A DNA stretch of 64,000 nucleotides from Anaeramoeba ignava BMAN (lineage: Eukaryota > Protista > Anaeramoebae). The translations under genes and the position numbers were made by a program. The notes beneath the pieces are model-generated. The model was not told the origin of the DNA. It saw nothing but the letters and a program-made list of their open reading frames with translations, and made no database searches. This document shows, piece by piece, positions 28,623 through 63,659 of the stretch. The first letter of the stretch is position 1; every line of letters starts with the position of its first letter. Location: assembly GCA_028826165.1 (NCBI GenBank), contig JAPDFW010000026.1:5761-69760 (forward strand), written 5' to 3'.

Positions 28623-31600
28623 ATGTTTTATACAAGACATACAACTCGAAATCAATTTACTTTTTCTCAAATTGAACAACTTATAACTAAAAAATCTAAA
28701 ATGGATTATTCAAATAAAAAAATTATTCCAAATCAAGGTTCTGAATCAGGAGATCCATTTCAAGACCTTCCTGATGAACGTAAATAAGCTTTACCACTTA
28801 AATTTATAATTATATTTATAATTAAATTTATAATTAAATTTATAATTAAATTTATAATTAAATTTATAATTAAATTTATAATTAAATTTATAATTAAATT
28901 TATAATTAAATTTATAATTAAATTTATAATTAAATTTATAATTAAATTTATAATTAAATTTATAATTAAATTTATAATTAAATTTATAATTAAATTTATA
29001 ATTATATTTATAATTAAATTTATAACTAAATTTATAATTAAATTTATAATTAAATTTATAATTAAATTTATAATTAAATTTGTAATAAATTTATAATTAA
29101 ATTTATAATTAAATTTATAATTAAATTTATAATTAAATTTATAATTAAATTTATAATTAAATTTATAATTAAATTTATAATTAAATTTATAATTAAATTT
29201 ATAATTAAATTTATAATTAAATTTATAATTAAATTTATAATTAAATTTATAATTAAATTTATAATTAAATTTATAATTAAATTTATAATTAAATTTATAA
29301 TTATAAATTTATAATTAAATTTATAATTATATTTATAATTAAATTTATAATTAAATTTATAATTAAATTTATAATTAAATTTATAATTAAATTTATAATT
29401 AAATTTATAATTAAATTAATAATTAAATTAATAATTAAATTTATAATTAAATTTATAATTAAATTTATAATTAAATTTATAATTAAATTTATAATTAAAT
29501 TTATAATTAAAATTTATAATTAAATTTATAATTAAATTTAATAATTAAATTTATAATTAAATTTATAATTAAATTTATAATTAAATTTATAATTAAATTA
29601 ATAATTAAATTTATAATTAAATTTATAATTAAATTTATAAATATATTTATAATTATATTTATAATTAAATTTATAATTAAATTTATATAATTTTATTTAT
29701 AATTAAATTTATAATTAAATTTATAATTATATTTATAATTAAATTTATAATTATATTTATAATTAAATTTATAATTAAATTTATAATTATATTTATAATT
29801 AAATTTATAATTAAATTTATAATTTTATTTATAATTAAATTTATAATTAAATTTATAATTTTATTTATAATTTTATTTATAATTAAATTTATAATTAAAT
29901 TTATAATTATATTTATAATTAAATTTAAAATTAAATTTATAATTATATTTATAATTAAATTAATAATTAAATTAATAATTAAATTTATAATTAAATTTAT
30001 AATTATTTTCTCTTTGTTCTTTTTGTAATTGTTATTTAGTTATGCTTGAGATATTTTCTTATTTAGAAAAACCTTTTGAACTTGGAATTTGTTGTCCAGT
30101 TAATAATCAATTTGCTAGAATATCTAATGATTATATGTTATGGAAAGAAATATTTAGAAAATATTCAGGATTATTTGATTATAACACTATTAGGCTAGTA
30201 GATTCAACTTATTTTGAAATTATGGGTAGATTTAAAAATAGATTTAAAAATAGATTTAAAAATAGATTTAAAAAATAGTTTAAAAATAGATTTAAAAATA
30301 GATTTAAAAAATAGTTTAAAAATAGATTTAAAAATAGATTTAAAAATATATTTAAAAATAAATTTAAAAATAAATTTATAATTAAATTTAAAAATAGATT
30401 TAAAAATAAATTTAAAAATAGATTTAAAAAATATATTTAAAAATAAATTTAAAAATAAATTTAAAAATAGATTTAAAAATAGATTTAAAAATAGATTTAA
30501 AAATAGATTTAAAAATAAATTTAAAAATAGATTTAGAAATAGATTTAAAAATAAATTTAAAATAAATTTAAAAATAGATTTAAAAATAGATTTAAAAATA
30601 AATTTAAAAATAAATTTAAAAATAAATTTAAAAATAAATTTAAAAATAAAATTTAAAAATAGATTTAAAAATAAATTTAAAAATAAATTTATAATTATAT
30701 TTAAAAATATATTTAAAAATAGATTTAAAAATAAATTTAAAAATAAATTTAAAAATAAATTTAAAAATAAATTTAAAAATAGATTTAAAAATAGATTTAA
30801 AAATAGATTTAAAAATAGATTTAAAAATAGATTTAAAAATAAGATTTAAAAATAAATTTAAAAATAAATTTAAAAATAAATTTAAAAATAGATTTAAAAA
30901 TAGATTTAAAAATAAATTTAAAAATAAATTTAAAAATAAATTTAAAAATAAATTTAAAAATTTAAAATATATTTAAAAATATATTTAAAAATATATTTAA
31001 AAATATATTTAAAAATATATTTAAAAATATATTTAAAAATATATTTAAAAATAGATTTAAAAATAAATTTAAAAATAGATTTAAAAATAGATTTAAAAAT
31101 AAATTTTAAATTAGATTTAAAAATAGATTTAAAAATAAATTTAAAAATAGATTTAAAAATAAATTTAAAAATATATTTAAAAATAAATTTAAAAATAAAT
31201 TTAAAAATAGATTTAAAAATAGATTTAAAAATAGATTTAAAAATAGATTTAAAAATAAATTTAAAAATAAATTTATAATTATATTTAAAAATATATTTAA
31301 AAATAAGATTTAAAAATAAATTTAAAAATATATTTAAAAATAGATTTAGAAATAGATTTAAAAATAGATTTAAAAATAAATTTAAAAATAGATTTAAAAA
31401 TATATTTAAAAATAAATTTAAAAATAGATTTAAAAATATATTTAAAAATAAATTTAAAAATAGATTTAAAAATAAATTTAAAAATATATTTAAAAATAAA
31501 TTTAAAATAAATTTAAAAATAGATTTAAAAATAGATTTAAAAATAGATTTAAAAATAGATTTAAAAATAGATTTAAAAATAAATTTAAAAATAAATTTAA

Positions 31601-32875
31601 AAATATATTTAAAAATAAATTTAAAAATTTAAAAATAAATTTAAAAATAAATTTAAAAATATATTTAAAAATAAATTTAAAAATATATTTAAAAATAAAT
31701 TTAAAAATATATTTAAAAATAGATTTAGAAATAGATTTAAAAATAGATTTAAAAATAAATTTAAAAATATATTTAAAAATAGATTTAAAAATAAATTTAT
31801 AATTAAATTTAAAAATAGATTTAAAAATAGATTTAAAAATTTATTTAAAAATAAATTTAAAAATAAATTTAAAAATTTAGAACCGTTGGGAATTGAAGAA
31901 TATTTCAATCAAAACTCAGAACAAAATCAATCTCTTCAACTCCAAATCGAACAACAACCCAAAAAATTATTTAACGAACAAATAAAAAAATTCCTGAATT
32001 TAAAAAAACAACAAAAAAAAAGACAAAAAGCAAAAGAAAGACAAAAAAAATTGCATAAAACGAAACTATTTCTAACAAGTCCAGGATATGTAACAACAAT
32101 ATTTTGCCTGATATTAATATCAGTAATGTTTGCTTGTTCAAAATTTGAATCATATTTCAACAAGTCATATATTTTTATTGTTTTGCCTGCATTGATTAGC
32201 CTTGCATTTCTTTTAATATTGACAGGATGGTTTGTTGTTTTCCCGTCAACTTCAATAGTTGAAAAAATATATTCAATAACATGCTTTGCTCTTTTTTTTG
32301 ACTTCTTTGCTTCGCTTTTGTTACTGGGTTTAACTGCTGACCACTATTCTGATCTCCAAAATCATTCTTGGATCTTTTTTGTTTGTTTTGCTTTGCTTTT
32401 TTCCCATTTTGTTTTGTGGATCTTTTTGGTGATTTATAACAAGCATGAAATCAAGATTGTTGCTTATAATCAAAATCTTTTCCATCAAATCCATGAATTT
32501 TGGGGATTTTTTTCATTTCCGTTTTTTTTATCAATTGTTTTTTTATTAGTAGCTTTTCAAAAAGCAAAAGTTGCCATGATTTTTTTAATATGTTCAAATA
32601 TTATTCCTTGGATTTTATTTTGCATTTTCCGTTCTCAAGATACTTTTCTTTTTCGCGATCTTCGAAAACTTGAGATTCCTCATTTAGTCATTTCTTTGCT
32701 TGCTTTTGCAACTGAATTGATGATGTATTTTAGATTGTTTCGAAATGTATCGATAAATTGGATTTTGATTTCTCTTCCAATTACAATTCCTTTATTTTTC
32801 TTTTGTATTCTTTTATGTTTCTGCATTTACAAAGAATGTTTGAATCACATGCGTTCAGCATTTTATGATTATTGA
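28623..32875 (+). CDS. F-box protein with ~7 C-terminal transmembrane segments (possibly TMEM185/FAM11-like)
   Basis: Exons 28623-28779, 30040-30225, 31881-32875 splice in frame to give F-box DPFQDLPDELMLEIFSYLEKPFELGICCPVNNQFARISNDYMLWK, then the multi-TM ORF. Confidence 0.85.
28798..30005. repeat. 12-mer repeat (TAAATTTATAAT)n in F-box gene intron 1
   Basis: Directly visible; intron 28780-30039. Confidence 0.95.
30227..31878. repeat. 12-mer repeat (TARATTTAAAAA)n in F-box gene intron 2
   Basis: Directly visible; intron 30226-31880. Confidence 0.95.
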
Positions 32876-43600: not shown

Positions 43601-46389
43601 GTTTCCCCGACACTACAACTATGAACCAGTTCACAAGATCCTTTGAGGAGCTCAAACTCAGGTATTTCTCATACTCAATCGGACAGCAATTCTTCAGATT
43701 CTCTCTTGTTCTTGAAGAAATCGCAAAATTCTCATCTTCTGAACTCTGTGACTTCATTCTCACAAAGCAAAGAGTCACCATCTTCCACAGAAACAATACT
43801 GTCGAGACTTACAAACTCGCCGATTGTTTCATCTACGATATCCCCAAAAACAATGAATGCAAAATGCAGCTTTTCCACTCCAAATTCGTAATTCTTTCTT
43901 TTCCCGACAACTCCACAAAAACAGAATTCATTGAAAAATCAATTGATTTCGGACTCGAAGCCTTTTTCGAGAACTCCTCTTGGAATTTCGCCATTTTCCT
44001 TCACGAAAAGGGACCCAACTCAACATCCAAAAAGGGTTTACTTTATCTGAAAGAAGATTCAATCGTTATTGTGGATGACTCCTCAAAATATCAAAACTCA
44101 ATCACCGAGACTGAGATCCTCACTCATCCAAAACACAATCTACTTTTGCAAATATCCTTCATCGATCAGCGAAGTTTTGTTGTATCGTTTGAAGACGAAG
44201 CGAGAAAACAGCTTTTCATCAACAACTTCAGGAAAGTCAACCTCAACATCCTTCACAAGCACCAAAAAAAAGAGGGTTATGAATCTGATGCTGATGAATC
44301 TGATCCAAAATCACCTCAACAAGACCCTCAACTTCCATCCAGTTTCCTCATCCTCATCTGCGATCAAGATTCACACCCTTCCAAAACAGCATCTCTTTCT
44401 CTCACTCCCTCAGGAATATTAATATCCTCTTCTTCTTTTCATGTTTTCTCAACATACAATCACTTCGCAATTAAAACACACTCAAAGAAAAAAGACTTGA
44501 TCCGCCTAGAATTCCCAGATACATCCTCCTTAACAATAAAATTCCCCGATAATCTCATCGTTGACAATTTTTTCCTCAATTTCAATCTTTTCAGCAAGAA
44601 TCAAAATTTAAATAATCAAAATCTACAAAATCAAAATTTAAATAATCAAAATTTACAAAATCAAAATTTACATAATCAAAATTTACAAAATCAAAATTTA
44701 AATAATCAAAATTTAAATAATCAAAATTTAAATAATCAAAATTTAAATAATCAAAATTTACAAAATCAAAATTTACAAAATCAAAATTTACAAAATCAAA
44801 ATTTACAAAATCAAAATTTAAATAATCAAAATTTAAATAATCAAAATCTACAAAATCAAAATTTAAATAATCAAAATTTAAATAATCAAAATTTACAAAA
44901 TCAAAATTTAAATAATCAAAATTTACAGAATCAAAATTTACAAAATCAAAATTTAAATAATCAAAATTCACAGAATCAAAATTTAAATAATCAAAATCTA
45001 AATAATCAAAATTTAAATAATCAAAATTTAAATAATCAAAATTTACATAATCAAAATCCCTATTTGTTAAACATTAAAAAATTCAAAGTGATTCTCAACG
45101 GAAAATTTGAGCAATTATCGGATTTCCAGAATCAACAAGCTAAAATCATCTTTTTTCAAGACAATCTATTTAAATTCGAAACAAAATCAACAGAAATAAA
45201 ATTAACAAAATCAAAGATATTCATTGACAATCAGCAAATTATTAATTTGCAAAACTCTCTCGAAAACGAAAAAAATATCCATTTCGAAACAAAAGAAATG
45301 AAAGTGGATATTTCATTCAATTCAAAAGAAGAAAAAATCCAATTCATGCAATTATCACAGAAAGCTGAATCCAAAACTAACATCCAAAAAAATTCTGAGA
45401 TTGAGAACCTGTTTTTCAATGTTTTCATCCAGGAAAGCCAAACTACCACTAAAAAACAAGCTGAAATCAAACTTACAAAAAACAAAATCATCGTTTCTTA
45501 TCAAAATTCAAATCAGACAACATTTTCACTTGCAAATATTTCCCAATTCTTTTTAGACCCAAAACACGAATCTCTAATCAGACTCCAATTCAGAGATTCA
45601 TCAACACTTGGCATCCATATGAAAAGCAAAGAAGAAAGATCCATTTTTTATGCGCATTTCCAAACAATCGCAAATCAAATCCAACAAAACCCAAATCAAC
45701 CAATCAAACTTCTCCAAAATAAAAAATACAACATTAAAATCCTTAAAGGATTTTTCCATTCAAATATTTCTGCCAGAATGTGGATCGACTCAAATGAACT
45801 GAAATTAGATTTGAATCCCAAGTTGATGAGTTTCCAAATTTTCCCAACAAAAACAAGGATATTCAGCGATCCAAAAAATGCCAAAAAAGCATCAATTTCA
45901 TCAACAAATCGCAAAAAAACCCAAATCACATTTGAATCTGAAAAAGAAAAAATTGAATTTATTGAGTTATTGAATTTCTCAATTAAATGTCTTCGCAATT
46001 TCCAAAAGGAATCAAGACCAAAAAGAAAAATCATACAAAACAGCAATTTACAAAACAAAAATGAAAGGAGTTCGGAATCTTTTTCATCTTCAATAATAAT
46101 AGATCAATCTGAAAATACTTTTGTTTTCAACGTTCAAATTTTGCATGATCAATTTACCTTTTCAGATGGTGAACTAATTTTGAATCCAAAATATATTTCG
46201 TTAAAAGATGAAAGAGCTCAAAAAATTTCAGATAATCTTTCTGATTGTTCTGTTACTTTTGATCCTGACAAAAATATTATTGCATATATTCATTTCAAAA
46301 CAGAAAAAAAGAAAATTGGATTTCGTGATGAATCTTTAAAAATGAAATTCCAAAAAAAATGGGATGAATTTATTAAAATAAAAAATTAA
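40673..46389 (+). CDS. ~1858-aa protein: N-terminal calponin-homology-like domain plus many PH-like repeats
   Basis: Exons 40673-40800, 40874-41666, 41734-46389 (5577 nt in frame). N-terminus WIENL...VLVELMKII...ALENFNWII...LGI...FDPEEVIENQNFQLI is CH-like; recurring 'I.F.S..E...F...F' helix-ending modules are PH-like. Confidence 0.75.
44598..45058 (+). repeat. 15-bp coding repeat (NQNLN/NQNLQ) ~30 copies
   Basis: AATCAAAATTTA(AAT/CAA/CAT) tandem, in frame in ORF 41737. Confidence 0.9.
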
Positions 46390-46422
46390 AAATTATTTTT
46401 TCATTTTTTTTCTTTTTCAAAA

Positions 46423-48207
46423 ATGAATGAAATTTTATTTTTTGGTTTAAATAAATATCCAACTCTTTTCAAAAACAAATCAATTACAATAGCAAAACCA
46501 ATTCAATTTAAATTTGAAAATGAAAATGAGAATGAAAATGAAAATGAAAAACAAATTAAACAAATTTCATCAAGTGTTTATTCAACAATTTTCCTTTTTG
46601 AAAATGGAAAAGCAATAGAATATTTAAATGAAAATGATTCAAATCAAAATATTGAAAAAATCCAAATTGAAGAAAATGTTCAAAAAGTAACTGTTGGATC
46701 TGAAAATGAAACTATTTTAACAATAGAAGGAAATGTATTTGCAAAAGGAAATAATATTAATTCAAATGATCCAAATGAATTTATCAATATTTCATCATTA
46801 ATTGAAGATACAAATGATAGAATAATTCAAGATATTGTTTCTGGAGCTCAATCAATTTATTTATTAACTTCAAATCAAAATGCTTATGGATTTGGTTCAA
46901 ATGAATATGGTCAACTTGGTTTTGATTCTAAAACACTTAAAGAAACAAAAAAACCAATTTTAATGATGAAAAATGTTTCTAAAATATTTTCAGGAAATTC
47001 TTCTTATTATGTTTTTCTTTTAAATTCAAATCAAGAATTATTTGGATGTGGCTATAATGAGTATTATCAACTTGGATTAGGAGAATCAAGAAAAGAAACA
47101 AAAATCCATAAATTAACCAAAATCCAAAATATTCCAAAAGGCGAAATAATTGATATTCAAACTGGGAATTCCCATTCAATAATGTTGATTGAAAATGAAA
47201 ATGAAAATCCAAAAAGAAAACTTTATTCATGTGGATTTTATCAATATAATGGACTTGGCAAAAAAGGAAATACTTATGAATTTACTGAAATCAAATCATC
47301 TTTATTTGAAAATGATGATATTATTCTTCAATTTTTTGTTGGAGGTTACCATACTTTGATTTTAACTTCTAATTCAAAATTAATTGGATTTGGAGATAAT
47401 TTTTATGGTGAATTAGGAACTGGAGATACGAAATATCAATTAATTCCAATTCAAATTAAACTTCCTAAATTAAGATTTAATGAAAATATTTCTAATTATC
47501 GTTTTTCTTGTGGATATTTTAATTCATTTCTTTATTATTCTCTTTCTCCTTTTTCCAATCTTGAAGAAGATTTGATAAAACTATTTAGAAGAAAAGAATT
47601 TTGCAATATTTCATTTAAAACCAAAAATGAAGAAATAATCAAAGCTCATAAATTAATATTGAAATATAGATTAAATCAAAATGAAAATCAAATTGAAAAA
47701 CTTAAAGAAATTATTTCAAAAAAATCAATTAAAGAATCAAATCAAATATTTGAAATGATTTATTCAAATAATTCCAAAATAAATCCAAAATTATATTTTG
47801 AAATTAAAGAAATTATAAATTCAAATGAAAAAATTGAAGAAACAATGAAAAGAATTTATTTAAATGAAAATGAAAATGAAAATGAAAAAGATTTTATAAT
47901 TGAAAGAAAAGAAAAACAATATAAATTTCCTAAACTAATATTAGTAATGAGAAGTGAATTATATAGAGGAATGTTTTTATCTGTAACAGAAGATACTTCT
48001 AATAAAGTTACAGATTATAGTGAATTAAGTAATAAATCATTTCAAATATTTGAATATTGGATTTATTCAAATCAAATTAAAGATGAAATTCAAATTACAC
48101 AAGAAATCATTAATGAAATTCAAATAGGAATTGATTATTTTCAATTAAATCAAACAAATCCAAATTTAATTGATTTATTAATTAACAAATTTAATAATCA
48201 AAATTAA
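46423..48207 (+). CDS. RCC1-repeat beta-propeller + tandem BTB protein, copy 1
   Basis: GSNEYGQLG, GDNFYGELGTG, VGGYHTLIL; AHKLILKYR; RSELYRGMF...WIYS. Confidence 0.92.
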   Translation: MNEILFFGLNKYPTLFKNKSITIAKPIQFKFENENENENENEKQIKQISSSVYSTIFLFENGKAIEYLNENDSNQNIEKIQIEENVQKVTVGSENETILTIEGNVFAKGNNINSNDPNEFINISSLIEDTNDRIIQDIVSGAQSIYLLTSNQNAYGFGSNEYGQLGFDSKTLKETKKPILMMKNVSKIFSGNSSYYVFLLNSNQELFGCGYNEYYQLGLGESRKETKIHKLTKIQNIPKGEIIDIQTGNSHSIMLIENENENPKRKLYSCGFYQYNGLGKKGNTYEFTEIKSSLFENDDIILQFFVGGYHTLILTSNSKLIGFGDNFYGELGTGDTKYQLIPIQIKLPKLRFNENISNYRFSCGYFNSFLYYSLSPFSNLEEDLIKLFRRKEFCNISFKTKNEEIIKAHKLILKYRLNQNENQIEKLKEIISKKSIKESNQIFEMIYSNNSKINPKLYFEIKEIINSNEKIEETMKRIYLNENENENEKDFIIERKEKQYKFPKLILVMRSELYRGMFLSVTEDTSNKVTDYSELSNKSFQIFEYWIYSNQIKDEIQITQEIINEIQIGIDYFQLNQTNPNLIDLLINKFNNQN

Positions 48208-48314
48208 AATTAAAATTAAAATTAATTTAAAAATTAAAATTAAAATTAAAATTAAAATTAAAATTAAAATTAAAAATTAATTTTTCATTTTTTCCATTTT
48301 TTTTCTTTTCAAAA

Positions 48315-50083
48315 ATGAATGATTGTTTATTTTTTGGTTTAAATGAAAATCCAAAACTTTTCAAAAATGAACCAAATAAAATAACAAAACCAATTCAATT
48401 TAAATTTAAATTTGAAAATGAAAATGAAAATGAAAAACAAATTAAACAAATTTCATCAAGTGTTTATTCAACAATTTTCCTTTTTGAAAATGGAAAAGCA
48501 ATAGAATACTTAAATGAAAATGATTCAAATCAAAATATTGAAAAAATCCAAATTGAAGAAAATATTCAAAAAGTATCTGTTAATATTCAAAATGTAGTTA
48601 TTTTAACAAAGAAGGAAATGTATTTACCAAAAAAAATATTAATCCAAATAATCCAAATGAATTTATCAATATTTCATCATTAATTGAAGATACAAATGAT
48701 AGAATAATTCAAGATATTGTTTCTGGATCTAAATCAATTTACTTATTAACTTCAAATAATATAGTTTATGGAATTGGTTCAAATGGTTATGATCAACTTG
48801 GTTTTGATCCTAATACATCTTATAAAGCAGAAAAACCAATTTTAATGATGAAAAGCGTTTCTAAAATATTTTCAGGAAATTCTTCAAATCATGTTTTTCT
48901 TTTAAATTCAAACCAAGAATTATTTGGATGCGGATATAATAATAGTCAACTTGGATTAGGAGAATCAAGAAAAGAAGAAACAAAAATCCAAAAATTAACC
49001 AAAATCCAAAATATTCCAAAAGGCGAAATAATTGATATTCAATGCGGATTGCTTTATTCAATAATGTTGATTGAAAATGAAAATGAAAATTCAAAAAGAA
49101 AATTTTATTCATGTGGGAAATATCTTTTTATTGGACTTGGCCAAAATAAAAATACTTATGAATTTACTGAAATCAAATCATCTTTATTTGAAAATGATGA
49201 TTATATTCTTGATTTTTCTGTTGGATGGTTTCATACTTTGATTATAACTTCCAAAGGGAAAATGATTGGATTTGGAGGTAATTATCATGGAGAATTAGGA
49301 ATTGAAGATACAAATAGTCAATTAATTCCTATTCAAATTAAACTTCCTAAATTAAGATTTAATGAAAATATTTCCAATTATCATGTTTCTTGTGGAACTC
49401 ACAGATCATTTCTTTATTATTCTCCTTCTTCTTTTTCCAATCTTGAAGAAGATTTGATAAAACTATTTAGAAGAAAAGAATTTTGTGATATTTCATTTAA
49501 AACAGAAAATGGAGAAATAATCAAAGCTCATAAATTAATATTAAAATATAGATTAAATCAAAATCAAAATCAAATTGAAAAACTTAAAGAAATTATTTCA
49601 AAAAAATCAATTAAAGAATCAAATCAAATATTTGAAATGATTTATTCAAATAATTCCAAAATAAATCCAATTTTATATTCTGAAATTAAAGAAATTATAA
49701 ATTCAAATGAAAAAATTGAAGAAACAATGAAAAGAATTTATTTAAATGAAAATGAAAATGAAAAAGATTTTATAATTGAAAGAAAAGAAAAACAATATAA
49801 ATTTCCAAAATTAATATTAATAATGAGAAGTGAATTATATCGAGGAATGTTTTTATCTGTAACAGAAGATACTTCTAATAAAGTTACAGATTATAGTGAA
49901 TTAAGTAATAAATCATTTCAAATATTAGAATATTGGATTTATTCAAATCAAATTAAAGATGAAATTCAAATTACACAAGAAATAATTGATGAATTAGAAA
50001 GGGGAATTGATTATTTTCAATTAAATGAAACAAATCTAAATTTATTTGATTTATTAATTAACAAATTTAATAATCAAAATTAA
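48315..50083 (+). pseudogene. RCC1-BTB copy 2 with a single -1 frameshift at ~48608-48610 (pseudogene or consensus error)
   Basis: TTAACAAAGAAGGA here versus TTAACAAAAGAAGGA in copy 3; restoring one A joins ORFs 48315 and 48845. Confidence 0.7.
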
Positions 50084-50283
50084 AATTAAAATTAAAATTT
50101 AAATTAAAATTAAAATTAAAATTAAAATTAAAATTAAAATTAAATTCAAAATTAAAATTAAAATTAAAATTAAAATTATAATTAAAATTAAAATTAAAAT
50201 CAAAATTAAAATTAAAATCAAAATTAAAATTAAAATTAAAATTAAAATTCCAAAATTATTTTTTCATTTTTTTCTTTTCAAAA

Positions 50284-52077
50284 ATGAATGAAATTTTATT
50301 TTTTGGTTATAATCGATTTCCAACTCTTTTCAAAAACAAACCAAATACAATAACAAAACCAATTCAATTTAAATTTGAAAATGAAAATGAAAATGAAAAT
50401 GAAAAACAAATTAAACAAATTTCAATCACAAAATTTTCAACAATTTTCCTTTTTAAAAATGGAAAAGCAATAGAATATTCCAGACAAAATATTGAAGAAA
50501 TCCAAATTGAAAATATTCAAAAAGTATCTGTTGGATCTGAAAATGAAGCTATTTTAACAAAAGAAGGAAATGTATTTGCCAAAGGAAAAGATATTAATTC
50601 AAATGATCCAAATGAATTTATCAATATTTCATCATTAATTGAAGATACAAATGATAGAATAATTCAAGATATTGTTTCTGGAGCTCAATCAATTTACTTA
50701 TTAACTTCAAATCAAAATGCTTATGGATTTGGTTCAAATGAATATGGTCAACTTGGTTTTGATTATGAAACACTTAATGAAACAAAAAAACCAATTTTAA
50801 TGATGAAAAATGTTTCTAAAATATTTTCAGGAAATTCTTCAAAACATGTTTTTCTTTTAAATTCAAATCAAGAATTATTTGGATGCGGAACAAATGAATG
50901 GGGTCAACTTGGATTAGGAGATACAGAAAGAGAATGGAAAATCCAAAAATTAACCAAAATCCAAAATATTCCAAAAGGCAAAATAATTGATATTCAATGT
51001 GGATATAATCATTCAATAATATTGATTGAAAATGAAAATCAAAATGAAAATCCAAAAAGAAAACTTTATTCATGTGGAGTTTATTATATTAATAGAACTG
51101 ATGACGAAGATGAAAATACTAATGAATTTACTGAAATCAAATCATCTTTATTCGAAAATGATTATATTATTGAAATTTCTGTTGGAAATGCACATGGTTT
51201 AATTTTAACATCCAAAGGGAAATTAATTGGATTTGGAGATAACGAATATGGTCAATTAGGAACTGGAGATACAGAAGATAAATTAATTCCAATTCAAATT
51301 GAACTTCCTAAATTAAGATTTAATGAAGATATTTCCAATTATCATATTTCTTGTGATAATTTTTATAAATCATTTCTTTATTATTCTCCTCCTTCTTTTT
51401 CCAATCTTGAAGAAGATTTGATAAAATTATTTAGAAGAAAAGAATTTTGTGATATTTCATTTAAAACCAAAAATGGAGAAATAATTGAAGCTCATAAATT
51501 AATATTGAAATATAGATTAAATCAAAATGAAAATGAAATTGAAAAACTTAAAGAAATTATTTCAAAAAAATCAATTAAAGAATCAAATCAAATATTTGAA
51601 ATGATTTATTCAAACAATTCCAAAATAAATCCAATTTTATATTCAGAAATTAAAGAAATTATAAATTCAAATGAAAAAATTGAAGAAACAATGAAAAGAA
51701 TTTATTTAAATGAAAATGAAAAAGATTTTATAATTGAAAGAAAAGAAAAACAATACAAATTTCCTAAACTAATATTAATAATGAGAAGTGAATTATATCG
51801 AGGAATGTTTTTATCTGTAACAAATGATACTTCTAATAAAGTTACAGATTATAGTGAATTAAGTAATAAATCATTTCAAATATTAGAATATTGGATTTAT
51901 TCAAATCAAATTAAAGATGAAATTCAAATTACACAAGAAATTATTGATGAAATTGAAACAGGAATTGATTATTTTCAATTAAATCAAACAAATCCAAATT
52001 TATTTGATTTATTAATTAACAAATTTAATAATCAAAATCAAAATCAAAATCAAAAAGAAAAATGTTTAATTTTTTAA
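50284..52077 (+). CDS. RCC1-BTB copy 3 with C-terminal CaaX motif (CLIF)
   Basis: 597-aa ORF paralogous to copies 1 and 2; ends QKEKCLIF*. Confidence 0.92.
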   Translation: MNEILFFGYNRFPTLFKNKPNTITKPIQFKFENENENENEKQIKQISITKFSTIFLFKNGKAIEYSRQNIEEIQIENIQKVSVGSENEAILTKEGNVFAKGKDINSNDPNEFINISSLIEDTNDRIIQDIVSGAQSIYLLTSNQNAYGFGSNEYGQLGFDYETLNETKKPILMMKNVSKIFSGNSSKHVFLLNSNQELFGCGTNEWGQLGLGDTEREWKIQKLTKIQNIPKGKIIDIQCGYNHSIILIENENQNENPKRKLYSCGVYYINRTDDEDENTNEFTEIKSSLFENDYIIEISVGNAHGLILTSKGKLIGFGDNEYGQLGTGDTEDKLIPIQIELPKLRFNEDISNYHISCDNFYKSFLYYSPPSFSNLEEDLIKLFRRKEFCDISFKTKNGEIIEAHKLILKYRLNQNENEIEKLKEIISKKSIKESNQIFEMIYSNNSKINPILYSEIKEIINSNEKIEETMKRIYLNENEKDFIIERKEKQYKFPKLILIMRSELYRGMFLSVTNDTSNKVTDYSELSNKSFQILEYWIYSNQIKDEIQITQEIIDEIETGIDYFQLNQTNPNLFDLLINKFNNQNQNQNQKEKCLIF

Positions 52078-52213
52078 AATTAAAATTAAAATTAAAATTA
52101 AAATTAAATTCAAAATCAAAATCAAAATTAAAAATTAAAATTAAAATTAAAATTAAAATTAAAATTAAAATTAAAATTAAAATTAAAAATTGTTTTCTTT
52201 TCTTTTCTTTGAT

Positions 52214-53559
52214 TTAAATTTTATTTCCTGCTCTTGCAATTGGGAAAATAATTTCAGAAAGTTCAAAAGGAAGAATTTTTTGAATAAAATCTTTAAGATC
52301 TTCTTCTTCTTTTTCTTCAGAAATAAATCTTTGATTTTTCATTAAAGAAAAAAAATGTAAATGAGAAATATAATCATTTTCATTTGATAATTGATGAATA
52401 TCATTTGATAATTGTTCAAAAAATAAAGGAGTTAATTTTAAAATTTGAATCATTGCATCTTCTTCAATTCTAAGTTTACAAAATTGTGAAAATATTTTTC
52501 TTGTTAAACTTCTTGGAAATTCAGGTTTTGAATGAATTTTTTGTCTTTTATGATTTTGATTTTGATTTTGATTTTGATTTTCATTTTCATTTTCATTTTG
52601 ATTTTGATTTTGATTTTTATTTTCATTTTGATTTTCATTTTGATTTTCATTATTTTCTAAATTTTCTTCAATTTTTCTTTTTGTTTGTATTTTTTCAAAT
52701 CTTTTTTTTAATGGATTTTTAAATGATAAAGTTTGTGATTTATTGAAATTCATTTTGTTAATAAATTTAGAAATATTTTCTTTTTTTTCAAATTGATTTT
52801 TTTGAATTGGATTAAAATTAAAAGGAATTCTAAGTTGATGAAGATCCAAAAATCTTTGAATATTTGAACTTTCTTGATTTGTAAATGATAATTGATATTG
52901 TTTTTTAGGTGAATTTATGATTTCTAATTCTTGAATATCATTTCTAAAAATAAATTAAAAATAAATTAAAAATAAATTAAAAATAAAATTATAAATATTT
53001 ACGAATCACTTTCAAGATTGAAATTATCTTCTCCATCAGAACTAAAATCTGAAGTATTTAAATTAAAATCAATATTTTCCACATTTTGAATTAGATTATT
53101 TTCATTTTCATTTTCATTTTCATTTTCATTTTCATTTTCATTTTCATTTTCATTTTCATTTTTAATTTCAATTTTTTTATTAGAAATTTGTCTAAAATTT
53201 GGATTTAAAGGATGTTTTGAAGTTTTAACTTTTTATTTGTTTGTTTGTTTAAAAGAAAAGAAAAGAAAAGAAAAGATTAAATTTAAAAAATTTAAAAAAT
53301 TTAATAAATAATATTTTTACTAGCTTTTGCTTGAATTATTTTTTGAATTAATGCTTTTGGTGTTTGAATAGGACTTGGTGTAAAATTTGTTGAAAAATTT
53401 TTATTATTTCTTTTATTTAATGAATTTAATTTATTATTTTGAATATTTTGAATTTTGAATATTTTGATTTTGATTTTGATTATTAATATTAATATTAGAA
53501 GGAGTTAAAATATTTGAAAGAGAACGAATTAAAGATCTTGGTGTTTTATAAACACTCAT
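52214..53559 (-). CDS. CENPT: Centromere protein T (CENP-T) homologue
   Basis: C-terminal histone fold plus extension FPRSLTRKIFSQFCKLRIEEDAM...FFEQLSNDI...LMKNQRFI...ILPFELSEIIFPIARAGNKI (cf. CENP-T LPLEYRQLLIPCAYSGN). N-terminal TPRSLIRSL and TPKALIQKII motifs. Introns 53320-53229 and 53002-52944; one indel near 53450. Confidence 0.8.
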
Positions 53560-53794
53560 TTTTTAATAATTATTATTATTAAAAAATAAAAAAATAAAAA
53601 ATAAAAAAATAATTTTAATTTTAATTTTAATTTTAATTTAATTTTTTTAACGGTTTTCTTTTCTTTTCTTTTCTTTTCTAATTTAAATAAAAAATAAAAA
53701 TAAAAAAGTGGAATAAAAATAAAGTGGAATTTTGAATTAAAAAATAAAGGATTTTATTATTAAAAGTAAAATAAAATTGAATTAAAAAGAAATT

Positions 53795-54816
53795 TTAATC
53801 TGAATTAGAATTAGAATTAGAATTTGAATTAGAATTTGAATTAGAATTAGATTTAGATTTTGATTTAGATTTAGAATTAGAATTAGAATTAGAATTAGAT
53901 TTAGAATTAGATTTAGATTTAGATTTAGATTTAGATTTAGATTTAGATTTAGATTTAGATTTAGATTTAGATTTAGAATTAGAATTAGAATTAGAATTAG
54001 ATTTAGAATTAGATTTGTTATCTTCTTTTGTTTCTATATCTTGATTTAAATTAGTTTGATTAATTTGAAAAGGAATTTTAATTCCAGTTTGTTTTGACAT
54101 CGAAGAAATTCTTTTATTAATTTCATTCTTTATTCTTTCAATTTCATTTTGAATTTCATTACTATTTTTTTCAAAAAGTTTTGCATTTTGATTTGGTTTT
54201 TTTTCTAAAGTTAATCTAATTTGATCCATTTTATCTTTAATTGATTTTTATTTAAATCTAAATCTAAATTTAAATCTTTTTTTTTTCTTCTTTGGTTTTA
54301 ATTGGATTTTTATGATGTTTTTAACATTAATTTCTTTTTATTCTTTTCATTCTTAATATTTTGTTGATGTTTTTTTGCTCCAATTTTATGTTTATGTTCT
54401 TTTTATCTAAATTTAAATTATTATTTGATTTTTTCTTCATTTTCTTCTTTTTATTCTTGAAGCTTTTCTTGGTTTAGGGATTCATTAAATCATTCAAACT
54501 AGTTTTTAAAATTTTTTTTCTTATGTTTATCTTCTTCAATTCTTTTTATTTTTCTTTTTTGATTTTTTATCTTTTTTGATTTGGATTTTTGTGATAAATT
54601 TTCTCCAATTTTTGAATATGTTTTTGGTTCTTGATTTTGATTAAATGATTGTGAATCAGGAAGTAATTCCATTGTTTGATGTATTATTAATCTTGCTTGT
54701 GTTAATGTTGATAAGTATATATTTGTTAATTCTTTAATTTTTTGTTTTAATTGCTCATTTTCTTTTTTTAATTCTAAATTTTGTTTTTTAATTTCTTCAT
54801 TTTCTTTTTGATTCAT
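53795..54816 (-). CDS. Hypothetical coiled-coil protein with SK/SN tail (ORFs 54499 and 53795 probably one gene broken by indels)
   Basis: Two collinear ORFs with coding-like K/N-rich sequence between them; Inr-like motif upstream at ~54862. Confidence 0.45.
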
Positions 54817-54908
54817 TTTTTTAATTATTATTTTAATTATTTTTATTTTTAAAAAGAAAAAAAATGAAAAAATTTTTTTTGCTTTTTTTATTTTTTTTAT
54901 TTTTGGAT

Positions 54909-57900
54909 TTAAAAATTTGATTTTAAATTATCAATATGATCTCTTAAAAAACTCCTTTCATTTAATTGATAAAAATCTTGAAGTTCTTCTAAATCATCAT
55001 AAATAGATTCTTTCATTCCATAATCAATTTCATCATAATATAAAAATTTAATAAAATAAGATAATGATTCATTTGATTTATCACTATAATCATTAACCCT
55101 ATTAGAATTATCATTAACACTAACAAACATTCCTCTAAAAAGTTCACTTCTTGCTTGTAAAATTAATTTATGAACTTTGATTTCTTTATCTTCACTTATT
55201 ATTATAAAATCTTTTCCATTTTTCATCTTCATATAATTTTTAAATCTTCAATTAATCCTTTTCTTTCCTTCTTTTTAATCCATTCTTCATTTTCTTCAAT
55301 TCCTTCGCAAATTCATTAATAATTTCATAATTTCTTTGATAATCATTTTCCTTAATTAATCCTGAATAAATAAATTTAAGAATAATTTCAATTTCAAATT
55401 TTCGTTTTTCTTTAAGAAATTAATTGCTTTTCAAATTTTGTTTCTCCAATTCTTGTTTGTAATATTAATTTATGAACTGGAATAACACAATCTTTCAATT
55501 TAATTTCATAATCACAAAATTCTCTCCTCTTTTAAATAATTTTCCAATATCTTCACAAACACTTTCAAATCTTTCAAAAATTCTTTTACTTCTTGATTAT
55601 AAATTTACAATCAACTGGTTTTTCATTCTTTTTATATTTTAATAATTTAATAATTTAATAATTTAATAATTTAATAATTTAAGAAAATTTACATACTAAA
55701 TAAATTATAAATAAATTAATAATTAAAATGATTATAATTTTTTAAATTTACATTCTTTTTTTTTAAATTTTTAATATTTAATAATAATATTTTTAATATT
55801 TTTAATTTTATACATTTTTAAATGAATTTCTGAACCAAATAAACATAACCAATAAATTGATTGTAAATTTTTATAATTTCTACAAGTAAAATGAAGTGGT
55901 GTATCTTTCTAATTAAATTTAAAAACAAGGGAAGATATTTTTTAAATTTATTTTTAAATTTTCTTTATTTTCTTTTACATCCTTTTATTAAAATAATAAT
56001 TAAAGATTAAATTTTCCCCTAATTTTATAAAAAGAAAAAAATTTTATAATTTTACTTTCTAAAAAAATTAATTATAAATTAAATTAAAAATAAAGATTTA
56101 ATTAATACATTAATAACATTTATCTTTGCTCCAATAGAAACAAGAAAATGAATAAAATTTGAATCTCCTAATAAACAAGCAAAATGAAGAGGTGTTTCTC
56201 CCTAATTTATTTTGAAAGAGAAAATATTATTTTCATTAAATAAAAATTAATAAAAATATTACCATCTAAAATATAAAAATAATAATAATAATAATAATAT
56301 AAAAATAAAATATTATTAAAATATTATTTACTTTCTAATATAAAAATAATAAAAAATTTAAATTAAAATTTTTTACAAAATTTAAAATACATTTTGACAA
56401 TTAATATCAGCTCCTGATTTAATTAATAATTCAACAATATTTTGTGAAGATCCTGATTTACAATATAAATGAAGTGGAAAATTTCCTAAATTTATTAATA
56501 ATTAATTTTTAATTTTAAAATTTTAAAATATAAAAGAAAAACAAACTCTCTAAATATAAATATAATAAATATATAATAATAAATATAAAAATAATTTTAA
56601 TATTTTTCTCTTTTTAAAAATTTTTGTTATAAATTTTATTACATTCTAATTTAAATTTCAAAATTAATTTATTAATAAATTTTTAAATTTTAATTTAAAT
56701 TTTTACATTTGGTTGATTAATTCCAATTTTATTTGAAACAAGAACTTCAATAAATTTTAAATCATTTTTTGATTTTCAAGTGCAAAAATGTAATGGAATA
56801 TTATCCTATTAAAATATTAAAATAAAATTTATTCTAATAATAATAATAATAAATTAAGTTTTATTTACAAACTATAAAATAATTTTAAATTCATTTTCTT
56901 TCTTTTAAATTAAAATAAAATGAATTACATTCTTTATTTTTATATTTAAATTAATATTTTAAATTTTAAAAATTTATTATTATTCAAAATACATCTTTTT
57001 CATCAATTTTTGCACCTGCTTTAATTAAACATAATACAATTTCATAAGATGATTTTTGACAAATTAAATGAAGAGGTGTAAATCCTTTTATTTTATAAAA
57101 TATTTCATTTTTAATTCTAAACAAAATTTTTATAATTTAATTAAATAAAAATTATAATATACTTTCTAATAAAAATTATAAATATTTCAATATTATTTCT
57201 AAAATGAAAATTTTTACATCCTAATCAAAAAATATTTAAAATTAAATTTTAATATATTTAAATTAAATTTATTTAATAAATACATCTTTTAAATTAACAT
57301 CAGCTTTTAGCTTCAATTAATAACTTTATAATCATAAAGAGATGGAGTTTTACCAAAACAGACATTATGTAATGGTGTTCTTTTTCATTATTAAATTCAT
57401 TATAAATTCATTATAAATTCATTTTTGGAAAAAATATATAAAATTATTACTCTCTATTTTTATTGGAATTAATTAATTTATTAATTTTACTTTTTCTTTT
57501 AAAAATATAAATCTTCAAACATCCTTTTATTTTTTAAATAATTAATTAGAAAAGAAAAAAATATTATTATTTTTAATATATAAAATTTTACATTTTGAAT
57601 ATTAACATCATTAGTTGATAAAATTAATAATTTAATTAATTCATCTGATAAATTAAAAGCACAAGCATTATAGTGATGTATTTTCCTAATAAAATAGTAA
57701 AATAAAATAAAATTTAATTTTATTTAATAAAATAATAATATAAAATGAAATAAAATACATCCTTTTATTTTATTTTTAAAAACAATTAAAATTAGTTTAT
57801 TTAAATATAAATTTTATATTTTTACTTTCTAAAAAGAAAAATTTTTAAATAAACATTTTCCAAAAATATAAAAAAAAAAAGATTTTTTCTTTTCAAAATT

Positions 57901-58921
57901 AAAAATACATCTTGTAAATTAGCATTTGCTCCAGATTTAATAAATTCAATTATATTTTATCTAATTTATTTTTACAAGCTGAATGAAGTGGTGAATCATT
58001 CTTTTTAATAATTAATTAATTAATAAATTAATAAATAAATTTATAATTTATTATAAATACTCACATATTTTTATATTTAATTTTAATTTTAATTTTAATT
58101 TTAATTTTAATTTTAATTTTAATATTTTACATCCTTTTTTATTGTTAAAATTAATTTTAATTTAATAAAAATTGTTTTTATAAATCTTAAATCAAACATC
58201 AAGAGAATTAACAATAGCTCCTGCTAATATTAATTTTCAAAAACAAATGGTGCTTTACTTTACAACAAAAATGTAATGGGTTGCATTCTTTTAATTGAAA
58301 AATTTTATTATATTTATTATTATTATTATTTTTGTAAAATATATAAAAATAAATTACATACTTTTTCATTTAAAAATATAATTTTAATTTTAATTTTTAA
58401 TTTTAATTTTATTTAATAAATTATTTTTAATACATTCTAAAATAAAAATTAAAAGGAAAAAGAAAATATTTTTAATTTTTAATATTTTTTTAATATTTTT
58501 TTAATACATTTTTGCATTTGGATCTGCTCCAATGAAATAAAATAATCAATAAACTTCAAATCTGCTCAAATTTACAAAATACATGAAGTGGTGTTTCATT
58601 CTAAATATAAATAATTTAATATTTAATTAAATAATTATTTTTATTAAAAATTATTTTTACATACTTTTTAAAAATAATATTAAAAAGAGAAAAAGTATGT
58701 AAAAAAAAACTCAATTTGCAATTTAAATTTTTATTTTAAAATAATTTTTAAATTGAATTTTTTACATTCTAAAAGTGTATTTATTTATTAATTTTAATAA
58801 ATAAAATTTATAATTTTTAATTTAAATTTTACATATCTTATTGAAATATTTTTCTTTTTGTAATATTATTTTTAATTTCTTTTAAATCTCCTTTTCTTAT
58901 TAATTGATTTAAATTTATCAT
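54909..58921 (-). CDS. Ankyrin-repeat (10 repeats) + tandem BTB protein encoded by ~34 exons including 22 single-codon microexons
   Basis: N-cap exon 58921-58833; ANK exons 58600-58508, 58287-58198, 58000-57909, 57685-57592, ~57385-57284, 57084-56993, 56805-56707, 56485-56391, 56201-56109 (clean 93 nt: GETPLHFACLLGDSNFIHFLVSIGAKINVIN), 55908-55814; terminal exon 55627-54909 with two BTB domains (VHKLILQTR, VHKLILQARSELFRGMF). Several 1-nt indels. Confidence 0.85.
55628..58832 (-). other. Array of paired 3-nt microexons (AG|NNN|GT) between ankyrin exons
   Basis: Plus-strand pattern ac-NNN-ct at 58766-8 (AAT), 58661-3 (TAT); 58434-6 (AAT), 58358-60 (TAT); 58131-3 (GAT), 58061-3 (degenerate); 57826-8 (AAA), 57759-61 (GAT); 57521-3 (GAT), 57451-3 (AGA); 57218-20 (GAT), 57163-5 (AAA); 56929-31 (AAT), 56869-71 (TTT); 56643-5 (AAT), 56547-9 (AGA); 56332-4 (AAA), 56263-5 (ATG); 56056-8 (AAA), 55979-81 (GAT); 55752-4 (AAT), 55693-5 (TAT). 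Confidence 0.88.
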
Positions 58922-59170
58922 AATTTTTGTTTGAAAAAAAATGAAAAAAATGAAAAAAAAAATTTAAATTAAAAATTTTTATTTTTTATTTATTTATAAA
59001 GGAAAATCCACTTTTTCTTTTCTTTTCTTCTTCTTATTAAAATTTCTCAAATAAAATCAAAATAAATTCATATTGGATTTTATTAAATTTTATTAAATTT
59101 TTATTAAATTTAATTGAATTTTATTAAATTTTTATTAAATTTAATTGAATTTTATTAAATTTTTTGGAAA

Positions 59171-62100
59171 TTAATCTGAGTAAATATTATTAAGAAATTT
59201 TGTTTCATCATAAAATTCGCAAGTAATAACATTTCCTCCAAAATATCGATTATCTAAAGAAAATTGAGCTTTATCAGCATTTTCCAAATTTTGATATAAA
59301 ATGAAAATTTTAATATTTTCTTTTTTTTCTTTTTTAGAATTTGATTTATTAGAACTTTGATAAACATAAATATCTTGAATAATTCCAAATTTTGAACATT
59401 CTTCATAAACTTCCCTTTCAAGATCTTCATCAACTTCATTTGAATCAACCATATTTTGTAAACAATACATCGCAGAAGTAGGTTTTTCTTTTCTTTGATA
59501 GTCTTTGGATTGATTATTGATGTCTAGTATTTGTATCAATATGTGAATCATCAAGTTTTTCCATTTCTTCTTGATTTTTTAAGTGATTTTGATTAAATTG
59601 ATTTTGATTAAATTGATTTTGGATTAAAGTGATTTTGATTAAATTGATTTGGATTAAATTTAGATTTGAAGTATTGATTTGGTTTTGGTCGATTTAAATT
59701 GATTTTTGATTAAGTGTTTGTAATTAAATTGATTTGGATTAAAATTGGTCGATTTTTAGATTTTAAATAAATTTGATTTCGAAAAATGATTTTTTAAAAA
59801 TGAGATTTGGAAAATGATTTTGATTAAATTGATTTTGGAAAAATGGATTTTGATTAAATTGTGATTTAGGTGGAGTTTTTGAATTTTTATTTGATGGTTT
59901 GACTTTTAATTGTTTTTCCTGCTAATTCAAATCCATCCATTTGATCAAGTGCTTTTTGTGCTGATTCTTCATTCTCAAATTGAATAAATACATCCTCTGT
60001 GTGTTCCTTTTTGTTTATCAATCTCTTTAAATTGTGATTAAATTAAATTAAAATTAAATTGATTAAATTAAAATTAAATAAAATGTAAATTAAAATTAAA
60101 TTAAATTAAATTAAATTAAATGAATTAAATTAAAATTGAATTGAAATTAAAATTGGAATTTAATGTTAGATAATTGGGCATGATTTAATTTTTCCAAAAC
60201 TCAAAAATTTTGTTCTAAATTTTCATTTGTATTATTTCAATTATTAGATCAAATATAAATTGTTCTTTTTTGAAATTTGATAATCCATTAAAATTTTGTG
60301 ATTCTGATTTGTGATCCGTTGATTGTGATTCTGATTGTGATTCTGATAAAAAGCATTATGAGTCAAATACCATTGAATTTTTGGTTTTTCATGAACTATG
60401 AAAAAATAAATTGAGTCTATCAATTCTTTGCTCTTTTAGCTGATTTATGAAATGAATATTCAATAAAAGACAAATCTTTATGTTTGTTTTGTTGTTGGTT
60501 ATTCTATTTAAAATTTAATAAATTTTAATAAATTTATTTAATTTAATAAATTTTATTCCACTTTTTAAAAATCTATATTATAGTATAAATAAAATAATAA
60601 ATTCAAATCTAAAATTAAATATTAAATTAAATATTAAATTAAATATTAAATTAAAAAATTAAGAAATTAAAATAAACATACAAATGGCATATCCATGACT
60701 TTTAATTGGTCCAAAAGCTCAAAATAAATCTTTAATTTCTTTAATACTTGTATTATTATCCAATCAATTTTGAATAAATAATCTAATTTTTGAATTTTAA
60801 TTGTAATTCTTCTTGTGTTTTTAAATCTAAACGCAGTTTTTAGAAACTTGTTGACTTATTTTAATGAAATATTTCCATTCTAATAAAAATAGAATTAGAA
60901 AAAGAAAAATTTCCATTCATATATAATTATAATATATATTACAAAATAAATAAATAAATATTAAAAATATTAATAATTAAATAATAATTTAAATATTATT
61001 TAACTTTCTATTACTTATTCAATACTATTTTTATCAAAATAAATAATTTCTGTTTTTAAAATTAATTTAGGTAAATGGTCCTTATTTTTACTTCTAAATA
61101 TTATTTTCCAAATTATTTAATTTAATGAATTTAATTTTAAAGTTATGATTAATTACTGTTTGATTAGATTTTGCATTTGTAATATATTTTCATTGCTGTT
61201 CTTTTTCTGAATTCTGGCATAGAACTTGAAGAAGAATATCACTGAAGAGTATTATCATTTTCATTTGAAATTGTTGAATTCTTTGATTTTTATTTGAATT
61301 TCTTGATTCAATTTCCTTAAAATGATTTGATTTACTTTTGAATTTTGAATGATGATTGAAATGTGTTGATTTCTTTTTAAATGGATTGATTTGATGTGAA
61401 TTTCTAAAATGTGTGTATGTGTTGATTGATTTAAATGTTGATTGATTCAATTTTCTTGAATGATTTGATTTGACTTCAATTTGAATTTCTTGAATGATTT
61501 GAATTTCGAATTTCTTGAGAATGATTTGATTTACTTGAATTTTTGAATTTTTTGATTTGAATTTTTGAATGATGTGAAGATGATATGATGGATGATTTGA
61601 ATAATGTGAATGATGTGAATGATGTGAATAATGTGATTTAATTTCTTGAATGATTTTTGAATGATTTAAATATTGCTGATTGTTTGAATTTCTTTACGAT
61701 GATGTATATGTATTTGATTGATTTTAAATTTCTTTGAATGATGTGTATTGATTGATTTAAATGTGAAATTGTTGAATTTCTTGGAATGATGGAATGTGTG
61801 AAAAGAATTTAAATTGAATAGTGATTTCTTGTATGTGTTGATTGATTTAATTTTTGAATTATCTTTTTATTGATTTTCTTGAGTTTTTCTCTTTTCATGT
61901 TTTTTTCATTTTTCTCAATTTTGTTTCTTCTTTTTCTTTTTTTCTTTTAAATTTGTTTTTTTAAATTTGATTAATTATAGTTTTATTTTAATTTTTGATT
62001 TGAAATTGTTTGTTTTAGATCTAAAATCATTATTTGATGTTTTAAATTATCAATTTCATCTGATTTTCTTTGTTTTTGTTTTATCCATAATAGAATGTAA

Positions 62101-63266
62101 TTTTATTTTTTTGAGTTTTTCTTTTTTTTGATTTTTTCTTTTTATTATTTCTTTTTGAATTTCATTTTAGAATTTGATTTTGAATTGATTTTGAATTTGA
62201 ATTTGAAATTTGAATTTGAATTGGTGGTTTTTGATTCTCCTTTGATTTTTGAATTTGAATTTAATTTGAATAAATTTGATTTTGATTTTGATTTTGTTTT
62301 TAATTTGATTTTTAATTTGATTTTGAATTTTGATTTTGAAGTTGAATTTGATTTGATTTTGAAGTGAATTGATTTTGATTTTGATTTTGGATTTTAAATT
62401 ATCTTTTAAATTTGATTTTAAATTTTCTTTTAAATTTTTAAATTTTTTTTTTATCTTTTGATTTTTTTTGATTTTGAATTTGATTTTGAATTTTCTTTTA
62501 AATTTTCTTTTAAATTTTAAATTATCTTTTGATTTTTGATTTTGATTTTTGATTTTACGGGATTTTGATTTTGATTTTGAAGTTGATTTTTTTTAAGTTT
62601 TGATTTGATTTGATTTTGAAGTTGATTTTGAATTTAGTTTTGATTTTGAGTTTGATTTTCGTTGTTTGAGTTTTTATTTGAAGTTGATTTTGATTTTGAA
62701 GTTTTTTTTTCTTTCGAGTTTGAGTTTTTGAAGTTATTTTGTTTTAATTTTCTTTTTAATTTTTGTTGTTGATATTTTAATAAATCAATTTTTCTTTGTT
62801 TTTCTTTTAATCTTTCTTTGTTTTTGGATTTTTTGGGTCTTAAATTAAATTTTATTTTTTTTTTAAAAAGATTTCTTTTAAATTTTTGAATGTTTTGATC
62901 ATTTTCTTCCAATGATTTTTAATTTTTCTTTTAATTTCTTTTAATTGTTTTTTAATTGATTTCTGTTGATTCTGTTGTTTATTTTGAAGAAAAATTGTGA
63001 CTTTATTCAATTTATTTTTGAATGAATTTCATTTTAATTTAATTGAATTCAGATTACGCAGTTAATTTTTTGTTTTTAATTTGTTCATTCTTTTGATTGA
63101 TTCATTAATTGGTGATTGAAGATTTTGATAAATTTAAAGTTTTGATTTTATTTTATTTTATTTTTATTTTTATTTTTACTTTTTATTTGTTTTTTATAAT
63201 GATTTTTATTTGAAAAAGAATGTTTTTCTTTGAAGATTTATTTAAATTATGATTTTCTAAATCCAT
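59171..63266 (-). CDS. PUF60: PUF60/half-pint-like splicing factor (RRM-RRM-UHM) with long low-complexity N-terminus; many indels
   Basis: UHM: LQNMVDSNEVDEDLEREVYEECSKFG...IKIFI...LDNRYFGGNVITCEFYDETKF. RRM1 fragments AFGPIK and MDMPF|NNQQNKHKDLSFIEY (intron 60681-60504). RRM2 FIQFENEESAQKALDQMDGFELAGKTIK. The start at 63266 is tentative. Confidence 0.75.
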
Positions 63267-63659
63267 TTTAAATTTTATTTTTTTTAAATTTATATGTTTT
63301 TTAAAATGAAAAATGAAAAATGAAATTTTTAATTTTACGTTAAAGTTTTCCATGAAAGAAAAATTTGAAAGAAAATTTTTGAAAGAAAAAGAAAATTTTT
63401 GGAAAAGAAAGCATAAAAATCATTATTATCCAAAAATAACAATGATAATTGAATTTAAAAGTTAAAGAATGAGAGAAAAAATGGAAAAAGAAAAATCAAA
63501 ATCAAATTAATCAAAATGAATCAAATTAGATAAAAATATTGATGAATTGAATCAAATCAGGTCAAATTATCAAATTTATTGAATTAAATTAAATAAAATT
63601 AAATTGAATTTAATCAAATGCAATTAAATCAAAATCAGATCAAATTGAATTGAATTGAA

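Follow-up and report, generated by a model that had tools for sequence, protein, structure and literature searches.

Paired single-codon exons in an ankyrin-repeat gene family of Anaeramoeba ignava

An ankyrin-BTB-BTB gene near the end of a contig

The window analyzed here, a stretch of 64,000 nucleotides, is the end of contig C28 of the Anaeramoeba ignava assembly (42.8 Mb, 147 contigs), which was built from nanopore reads and polished with Illumina data (PMC11550330). The minus strand at positions 58921-54909 carries a gene made up of a cap exon, ten exons of one ankyrin (ANK) repeat each, and an exon for tandem BTB domains. Two single-codon exons (microexons) of the form AG-NNN-GT lie at each of its 11 junctions. 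The original prediction concerned the interval 58832-55628, which runs from the first donor to the last acceptor. The features are as follows.

54909..58921, minus strand: whole ANK-BTB-BTB gene; 34 exons and 611 amino acids in the clean copy (L011:5278-9357)
58833..58921, minus strand: exon 1, N-terminal cap, 29 amino acids; frameshift in the window copy only
55814..58600, minus strand: ten ankyrin exons, each 31-33 codons long; the five exons tested match Pfam PF00023 from position 2/3 to 32 of 33
58600-58508, 58287-58198, 58000-57909, 57685-57592 and about 57385-57284, minus strand: ankyrin exons 1-5
57084-56993, 56805-56707, 56485-56391, 56201-56109 and 55908-55814, minus strand: ankyrin exons 6-10
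58661..58768, minus strand: junction 0 microexons, AAT Asn (58768-66) and TAT Tyr (58663-61)
58358..58436, minus strand: junction 1 microexons, AAT Asn and TAT Tyr
58061..58133, minus strand: junction 2 microexons, GAT Asp and a second whose acceptor is lost in the window, where it reads TGA (CGA Arg in the clean copy)
57759..57828, minus strand: junction 3 microexons, AAA Lys and GAT Asp
57451..57523, minus strand: junction 4 microexons, GAT Asp and AGA Arg
57163..57220, minus strand: junction 5 microexons, GAT Asp and AAA Lys
56869..56931, minus strand: junction 6 microexons, AAT Asn and TTT Phe
56547..56645, minus strand: junction 7 microexons, AAT Asn and AGA Arg; overlapping alternative TTT at 56545-43
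56263..56334, minus strand: junction 8 microexons, AAA Lys and ATG Met
55979..56058, minus strand: junction 9 microexons, AAA Lys and GAT Asp
55693..55754, minus strand: junction 10 microexons, AAT Asn and TAT Tyr
54909..55627, minus strand: terminal exon, tandem BTB-BTB, 240 amino acids (PF00651, structural model, fold match); no BACK domain after it
52158..63305: duplicated segment near the contig end, 82-94% identical to contig C72, with differences that are mostly indels

The 11 gaps between large exons are about 190-270 nt long, and each holds its two AG-NNN-GT triplets 50-90 nt apart. A strict scan of 55628-58832 finds 19 sense motifs with exactly 3 nt between AG and GT; other spacer lengths give 0-2 each, the antisense strand gives one, and a relaxed scan recovers 21 of the 22 expected motifs. 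The public annotation holds a 146-residue fragment of this gene, and the triplets are missing from the NCBI models.

Contig C72 carries a duplicate of the surrounding 12 kb or so, and its copy of the gene (L011:5278-9357) is 94% identical to the window copy. The two differ by 40 indels (26 in homopolymers) and 9 substitutions per 1,770 coding nucleotides. Most coding exons of the window copy are frameshifted, so the prediction that every junction falls between codons is verifiable on the C72 copy only. The gene model was built on that copy, and its exons were searched singly. Its 12 large exons all have open frames and every one of the 33 introns is in phase 0, which bears out the modular layout, with one repeat per symmetric exon. 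Since the neighboring genes in the duplicated segment are damaged alike, the comparison points to a redundant window copy of unpolished nanopore consensus; a pseudogene reading was rejected because those neighbors show the same damage and C72 carries an intact copy.

A CENP-T histone-fold gene (52214-52849) and an RRM gene (59171-60021), both on the minus strand, flank the ankyrin gene and are damaged relative to C72. Elsewhere in the window lie tandem RCC1-BTB genes (46372-52188; open reading frames of 412 and 597 amino acids plus an upstream copy), a 144-bp unit repeated 26 times at 6% GC (1804-5600), and long 12-bp satellites (17045-18587, 21224-24856 and 27236-31876). The 144-bp array contains no AG-NNN-GT units and is unrelated to the microexons.

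Placement of the microexons in the ankyrin repeat

The PF00023 match and the D-x-x-G-x-T-P-L-H register identify the gene product as an ankyrin-repeat protein. Each ankyrin exon begins with the G of this motif and ends with a D, so the two triplets supply both x residues of D-x-x-G. These residues lie on the ankyrin binding hairpin and are positions that are randomized in DARPin libraries. Register and Pfam boundaries thus place the single-codon exons at both variable residues of the hairpin, as expected. If the microexons are included, the repeat period is 34, as in intron-poor paralogues; without them it is 32. They account for 22 of the 611 codons and occur in pairs only, rather than forming the majority of the coding sequence as in micro-exon genes (MEGs).

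Occurrence across the family and in transcripts

The single-codon-exon architecture is real, coding and family-wide. Genome-wide, 249 sites have an acceptor two codons before TPLH, versus one for a control pattern, and 17 of 20 such loci examined have the double-microexon layout. The statistics that follow cover 18 genes with 88 junctions and 162 microexons, which are part of the family only. AG-GT motifs with a 3-nt spacer number 164 at these junctions, and other spacer lengths occur 3-13 times. None of the 162 triplets is a stop codon, where 10.7 would be expected from their own base frequencies (P about 2e-5) and 15.3 from intron triplets. The junctions contain zero, one, two, three or four triplets in 4, 12, 67, 4 and 1 cases, respectively, and gap length scales with this number. 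The three introns of a unit are short (median 68 nt).

The canonical D-x-x-G spacing of 7 is obtained at 47 of 53 anchorable junctions with the microexons and at 1 of 53 without them. At junctions with one microexon, the missing residue is made up by the neighboring exon. Aromatic residues favor the second slot (17 of 67, against 5 of 67 in the first; P = 0.009), in line with ordered inclusion. The donor sites of microexons match the consensus at least as well as those of large exons. The ankyrin paralogues also include a large intronless class with canonical annotated spacing.

In four ankyrin genes other than the window gene, the EukProt transcriptome ORFs equal the NCBI models plus extra residues exactly at the hairpin. 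This comparison, made at the protein level between ORF and genome annotation, finds such residues at 21 junctions (5, 4, 11 and 1 per gene), two at 20 of them and one at the other. Because these assembled transcripts of related genes carry the residues in order, we regard the odd gene structure as genuine. Since one of the four genes encodes an ANK-kinase, the layout is not restricted to BTB genes. All four proteins are of the inclusive form, with repeats collinear with the genomic order; de novo assemblies show dominant isoforms, and minor skipping would therefore be invisible in them.

The triplets might instead be chance AG and GT pairs in ordinary 200-nt introns, or assembly noise, given that the window copy is full of errors and that the public annotation skips them. 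Spacer-length specificity, stop avoidance, register compensation, the transcript ORFs and the occurrence in a second species (below) leave this reading effectively refuted. The public A. ignava proteome is consequently short of binding-hairpin residues in many ankyrin proteins. In about 35 annotated ANK-BTB proteins (NCBI, P0030-P0174) the hairpins lack two residues, as would result from missed microexons.

We could find no description of Anaeramoeba microexons in the literature, including the text and supplements of the genome paper (PMC11550330), and the architecture is apparently undescribed.

A second species and the age of the layout

An ANK-BTB gene of A. flamelloides has the same double junction (N/K/G/E, with Lys and Gly as the single codons), identical in two strains. 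Other genes of this species have single phase-0 introns at or beside the same hairpin positions. The average protein identity between the two species is only 37% (PMC11550330), and the microexon layout, judged from this one junction, therefore probably predates their split. In an A. flamelloides ANK-BTB gene (L060, L061), annotated junctions appear to be non-GT-AG or shifted at their boundaries.

A tree of the BTB tails is star-like and gives no direction of intron gain or loss. The microexon genes occupy long terminal branches in it, and its only recent expansion is intron-poor. A first look at the genome gives 2,206 BTB candidates, a very large expansion in which the partner domains are ANK, RCC1, Ras and TLDc, and more than 100 long intronless ankyrin open frames occur genome-wide.

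The BTB-BTB tail and Cullin-3

The predicted BTB-BTB tail is confirmed by Pfam (PF00651, E = 2.8e-15 for the second domain) and by a structural model (pLDDT 95.8) in which the two domains pack like a BTB dimer. Its best fold match is the tethered Miz1-BCL6 BTB pair (TM 0.64), and by sequence it is closest, among solved structures, to KBTBD4, KBTBD2, KLHL3 and SPOP. The genome encodes a Cullin-3: the N-terminus of a cullin on contig C58 matches Cul3 with E = 1e-21 versus 4e-6 for Cul4. At least three Cul4-like genes and Cul1/2-like genes are also present. The first intron of the Cullin-3 gene (L042, G000:C58:18.8-24 kb) is 2.5 kb long and A+T-rich.

Where the phi-x-E Cul3 motif is expected, the tail has an invariant V-x-D (V179/D181). 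The chain ends after the second BTB domain with no BACK hit in Pfam and no 3-box, so Cullin-3 binding is not assured. A role of the protein as a Cullin-3 substrate adaptor is plausible.

Splicing, recombination or ordinary divergence

The original prediction proposed that microexons and ankyrin exons are skipped variously, as in Dscam, to produce variant binding surfaces on a constant tail. The codons fall on the ankyrin binding hairpin, and every exon is symmetric, so any skip would keep the frame. Precedents exist in the LRR exons of brown algal ROCO genes (PMC11378527) and in schistosome MEGs (10.1101/2023.06.21.545858). The transcript ORFs, however, are inclusive and collinear at all 21 junctions. 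A search for mutually exclusive exon clusters found one exon per slot, each needed for the register, so splicing could only delete repeats, unlike in Dscam, and a skip would shorten the conserved hairpin. In the introns, the search for docking or selector pairing and for conserved or complementary elements showed only A+T-rich background repeats. The strong consensus match of the microexon donors also speaks against optional use.

Excess variability at the microexon codons was also anticipated, and none appears. Residue entropy is 3.16 bits at the first position and 3.69 at the second, versus 3.39 and 3.49 in a comparator picked by annotated spacing (one member verified as intronless, one later found to have a single microexon pair), and the bootstrap intervals span zero. 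Among 113 ANK exons of 18 genes, again part of the family, nucleotide identity reaches at most 72%. In 21 cases the nearest neighbor of an exon belongs to its own gene, where 6.5 would be expected; this is consistent with old tandem duplication rather than with current exchange. Introns are as similar between ANK genes (0.58) as within them (0.54-0.63) and have not been homogenized; the predicted shuffling among paralogues is thus not detected. Entropy, exon and intron identity, the lack of alternative exons and the intron-poor expansion leave combinatorial splicing unsupported for the ANK genes, and we consider it quite unlikely.

The idea that recombination acts on these units at the DNA level fares better in part. 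Intron-plus-codon units might behave as a minisatellite in which unequal crossover or conversion adds, removes or swaps single residues of binding loops, under selection for this capacity. Junctions vary from zero to four microexons, those with three or four lengthen the hairpin (5 of 88), and the unit is amplified in other genes, with 20 units in a coiled-coil gene and a run of 16, in phase 1, in the TLDc loop of a BTB-BACK-TLDc gene. Within the ANK genes, the intron, exon and entropy data above reveal no such exchange, and the microexons agree between the C28 and C72 genome copies and between the two A. flamelloides strains. A selected device of this kind is therefore unlikely.

A splicing factor could alternatively set microexon inclusion family-wide, toggling adaptors between binding-competent and hairpin-truncated forms in the manner of animal neural microexons. 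The structure common to ANK-BTB and ANK-kinase binding loops would permit coordinated control, and regulated microexon programs are known in animals (discussed in PMC8831610). No shared enhancer motif was found near the microexons, only the included form is present in the assembled ORFs, and many paralogues have lost the introns, so a regulatory switch is very improbable here.

We favor, as the probable explanation, an old ANK-BTB-BTB gene of a probable Cullin-3 adaptor family whose single-codon exons are normally kept, most likely constitutively. The repeating unit would be an ankyrin exon, an intron, a codon, an intron, a codon and an intron, so that both variable residues of the D-x-x-G beta-hairpin lie between short introns, three in all, and retention of both codons yields an ordinary 34-residue repeat. 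Splicing would proceed by intron definition, with the introns removed singly. Duplications of entire units and of genes may have spread the layout, and intron loss may have eroded it to paralogues with one microexon, none, or no introns; occasional duplication of an intron-plus-codon unit could lengthen the loop. Repertoire diversity would then reflect the number of genes and their ordinary divergence rather than recombination per transcript. What speaks against this explanation is that three introns within 6 nt of coding sequence have been kept over hundreds of junctions, which neutrality alone leaves unexplained. Even if nothing is diversified, ordered tandem three-base exons pose a test for the spliceosome, since such exons cannot accommodate binding at both splice sites simultaneously, and introns on either side of consecutive codons are relevant to intron gain beside existing introns.

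Comparison with known systems

Schistosome MEGs have very short symmetric exons of 3-81 bp (10.1101/2023.06.21.545858), and their runs of such exons are likewise missed by automatic annotation. MEG proteins are secreted; in their genes introns are long, most exons measure 15 bp and alternative splicing has been verified, whereas the Anaeramoeba exons are uniformly one codon long, are separated by introns of about 68 nt, belong to a folded intracellular repeat and are seen included. Brown algal ROCO LRR genes likewise form an expanded family of candidate receptors in which each exon, always of equal phase, encodes one repeat (PMC11378527). They lack single-codon exons and show shuffling, splice variants and positive selection. 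In Anaeramoeba neither shuffling nor splice variants were detected in the sampled genes and assembled ORFs, and residue entropy among the strongly diverged paralogues shows no excess. Ciliate LRR genes are another such expanded family of candidate receptors. Arthropod Dscam1 shares the proposed combinatorial use of modular exons, but the Anaeramoeba gene lacks arrays of alternatives for a given slot, and no docking-selector element was found in it.

Human ABTB1 and IBTK are ANK-BTB-BTB Cullin-3 adaptors. Like these, the Anaeramoeba protein combines substrate-binding repeats with tandem BTB domains, and its tail is comparable to the BTB domains of SPOP and the KBTBD proteins; it differs in its ten repeats, its V-x-D, the absence of BACK and 3-box, and its lineage-specific expansion. 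To our knowledge, F-box and MATH-BTB families do not have a single-codon-exon structure. Their likeness to the present family is that of a very large set of ubiquitin-ligase adaptors with varied N-terminal domains, and the nematode and plant expansions have been proposed to recognize foreign proteins, according to a paper that cites Thomas 2006 (PMC4063957). Microexons of plants and animals are 1-15 nt long, widely misannotated and usually included (PMC8831610). Those are described as scattered singles, whereas in Anaeramoeba they form runs of 16-20 or, at one fixed structural position, tandem pairs.

Single-codon exon arrays in other genes

The pattern W8-AG-NNN-GTA-W6 has 2,028 matches genome-wide, versus 286 with a 6-nt core and 289 with a 4-nt core. 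Spacer length served as the control here; reversed patterns give high counts (1,280-2,274) and are not splice-like. The pattern catches just 40% of the modeled microexons, so roughly two to four thousand candidate 3-nt exons are implied, many of which fall outside ankyrin genes.

Two such loci suggest that intron-plus-codon units can amplify. A coiled-coil gene (L050; G000:C1:409305-413060, minus strand) has a run of 20 open triplets whose flanks are 89% identical and whose triplets are 35% identical. The gene ends in about 35 such candidates, which are separated by near-identical introns of 70-80 nt and split by an ATT microsatellite of about 950 nt. Tandem BTB-BACK-TLDc genes (L051; G000:C1:1057919-1067211, minus strand) have phase-1 runs of at least 16 candidate 3-nt exons in a TLDc loop. 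These arrays differ in length and sequence between paralogues, and none of the 64 ordered pairs would form a stop codon.

The arrays of 16-20 units, with their similar introns, are better candidates for a diversifier than the ANK genes. The single-codon exons might in general be cassettes of active diversification, in which splicing choice, unit turnover or both rewrite the loops of Cullin-3 adaptors residue by residue; the ANK genes would then be an old, mostly fixed form, and the arrays in the TLDc loop and coiled-coil tail the active form. We regard this broader reading as tentative and somewhat doubtful. If the amplified arrays prove variable, this protist, which houses symbionts, would have an antibody-like way of diversifying loops that has not been reported before. 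A paralogue of the coiled-coil gene (L052) has about six older units, and their introns are divergent.
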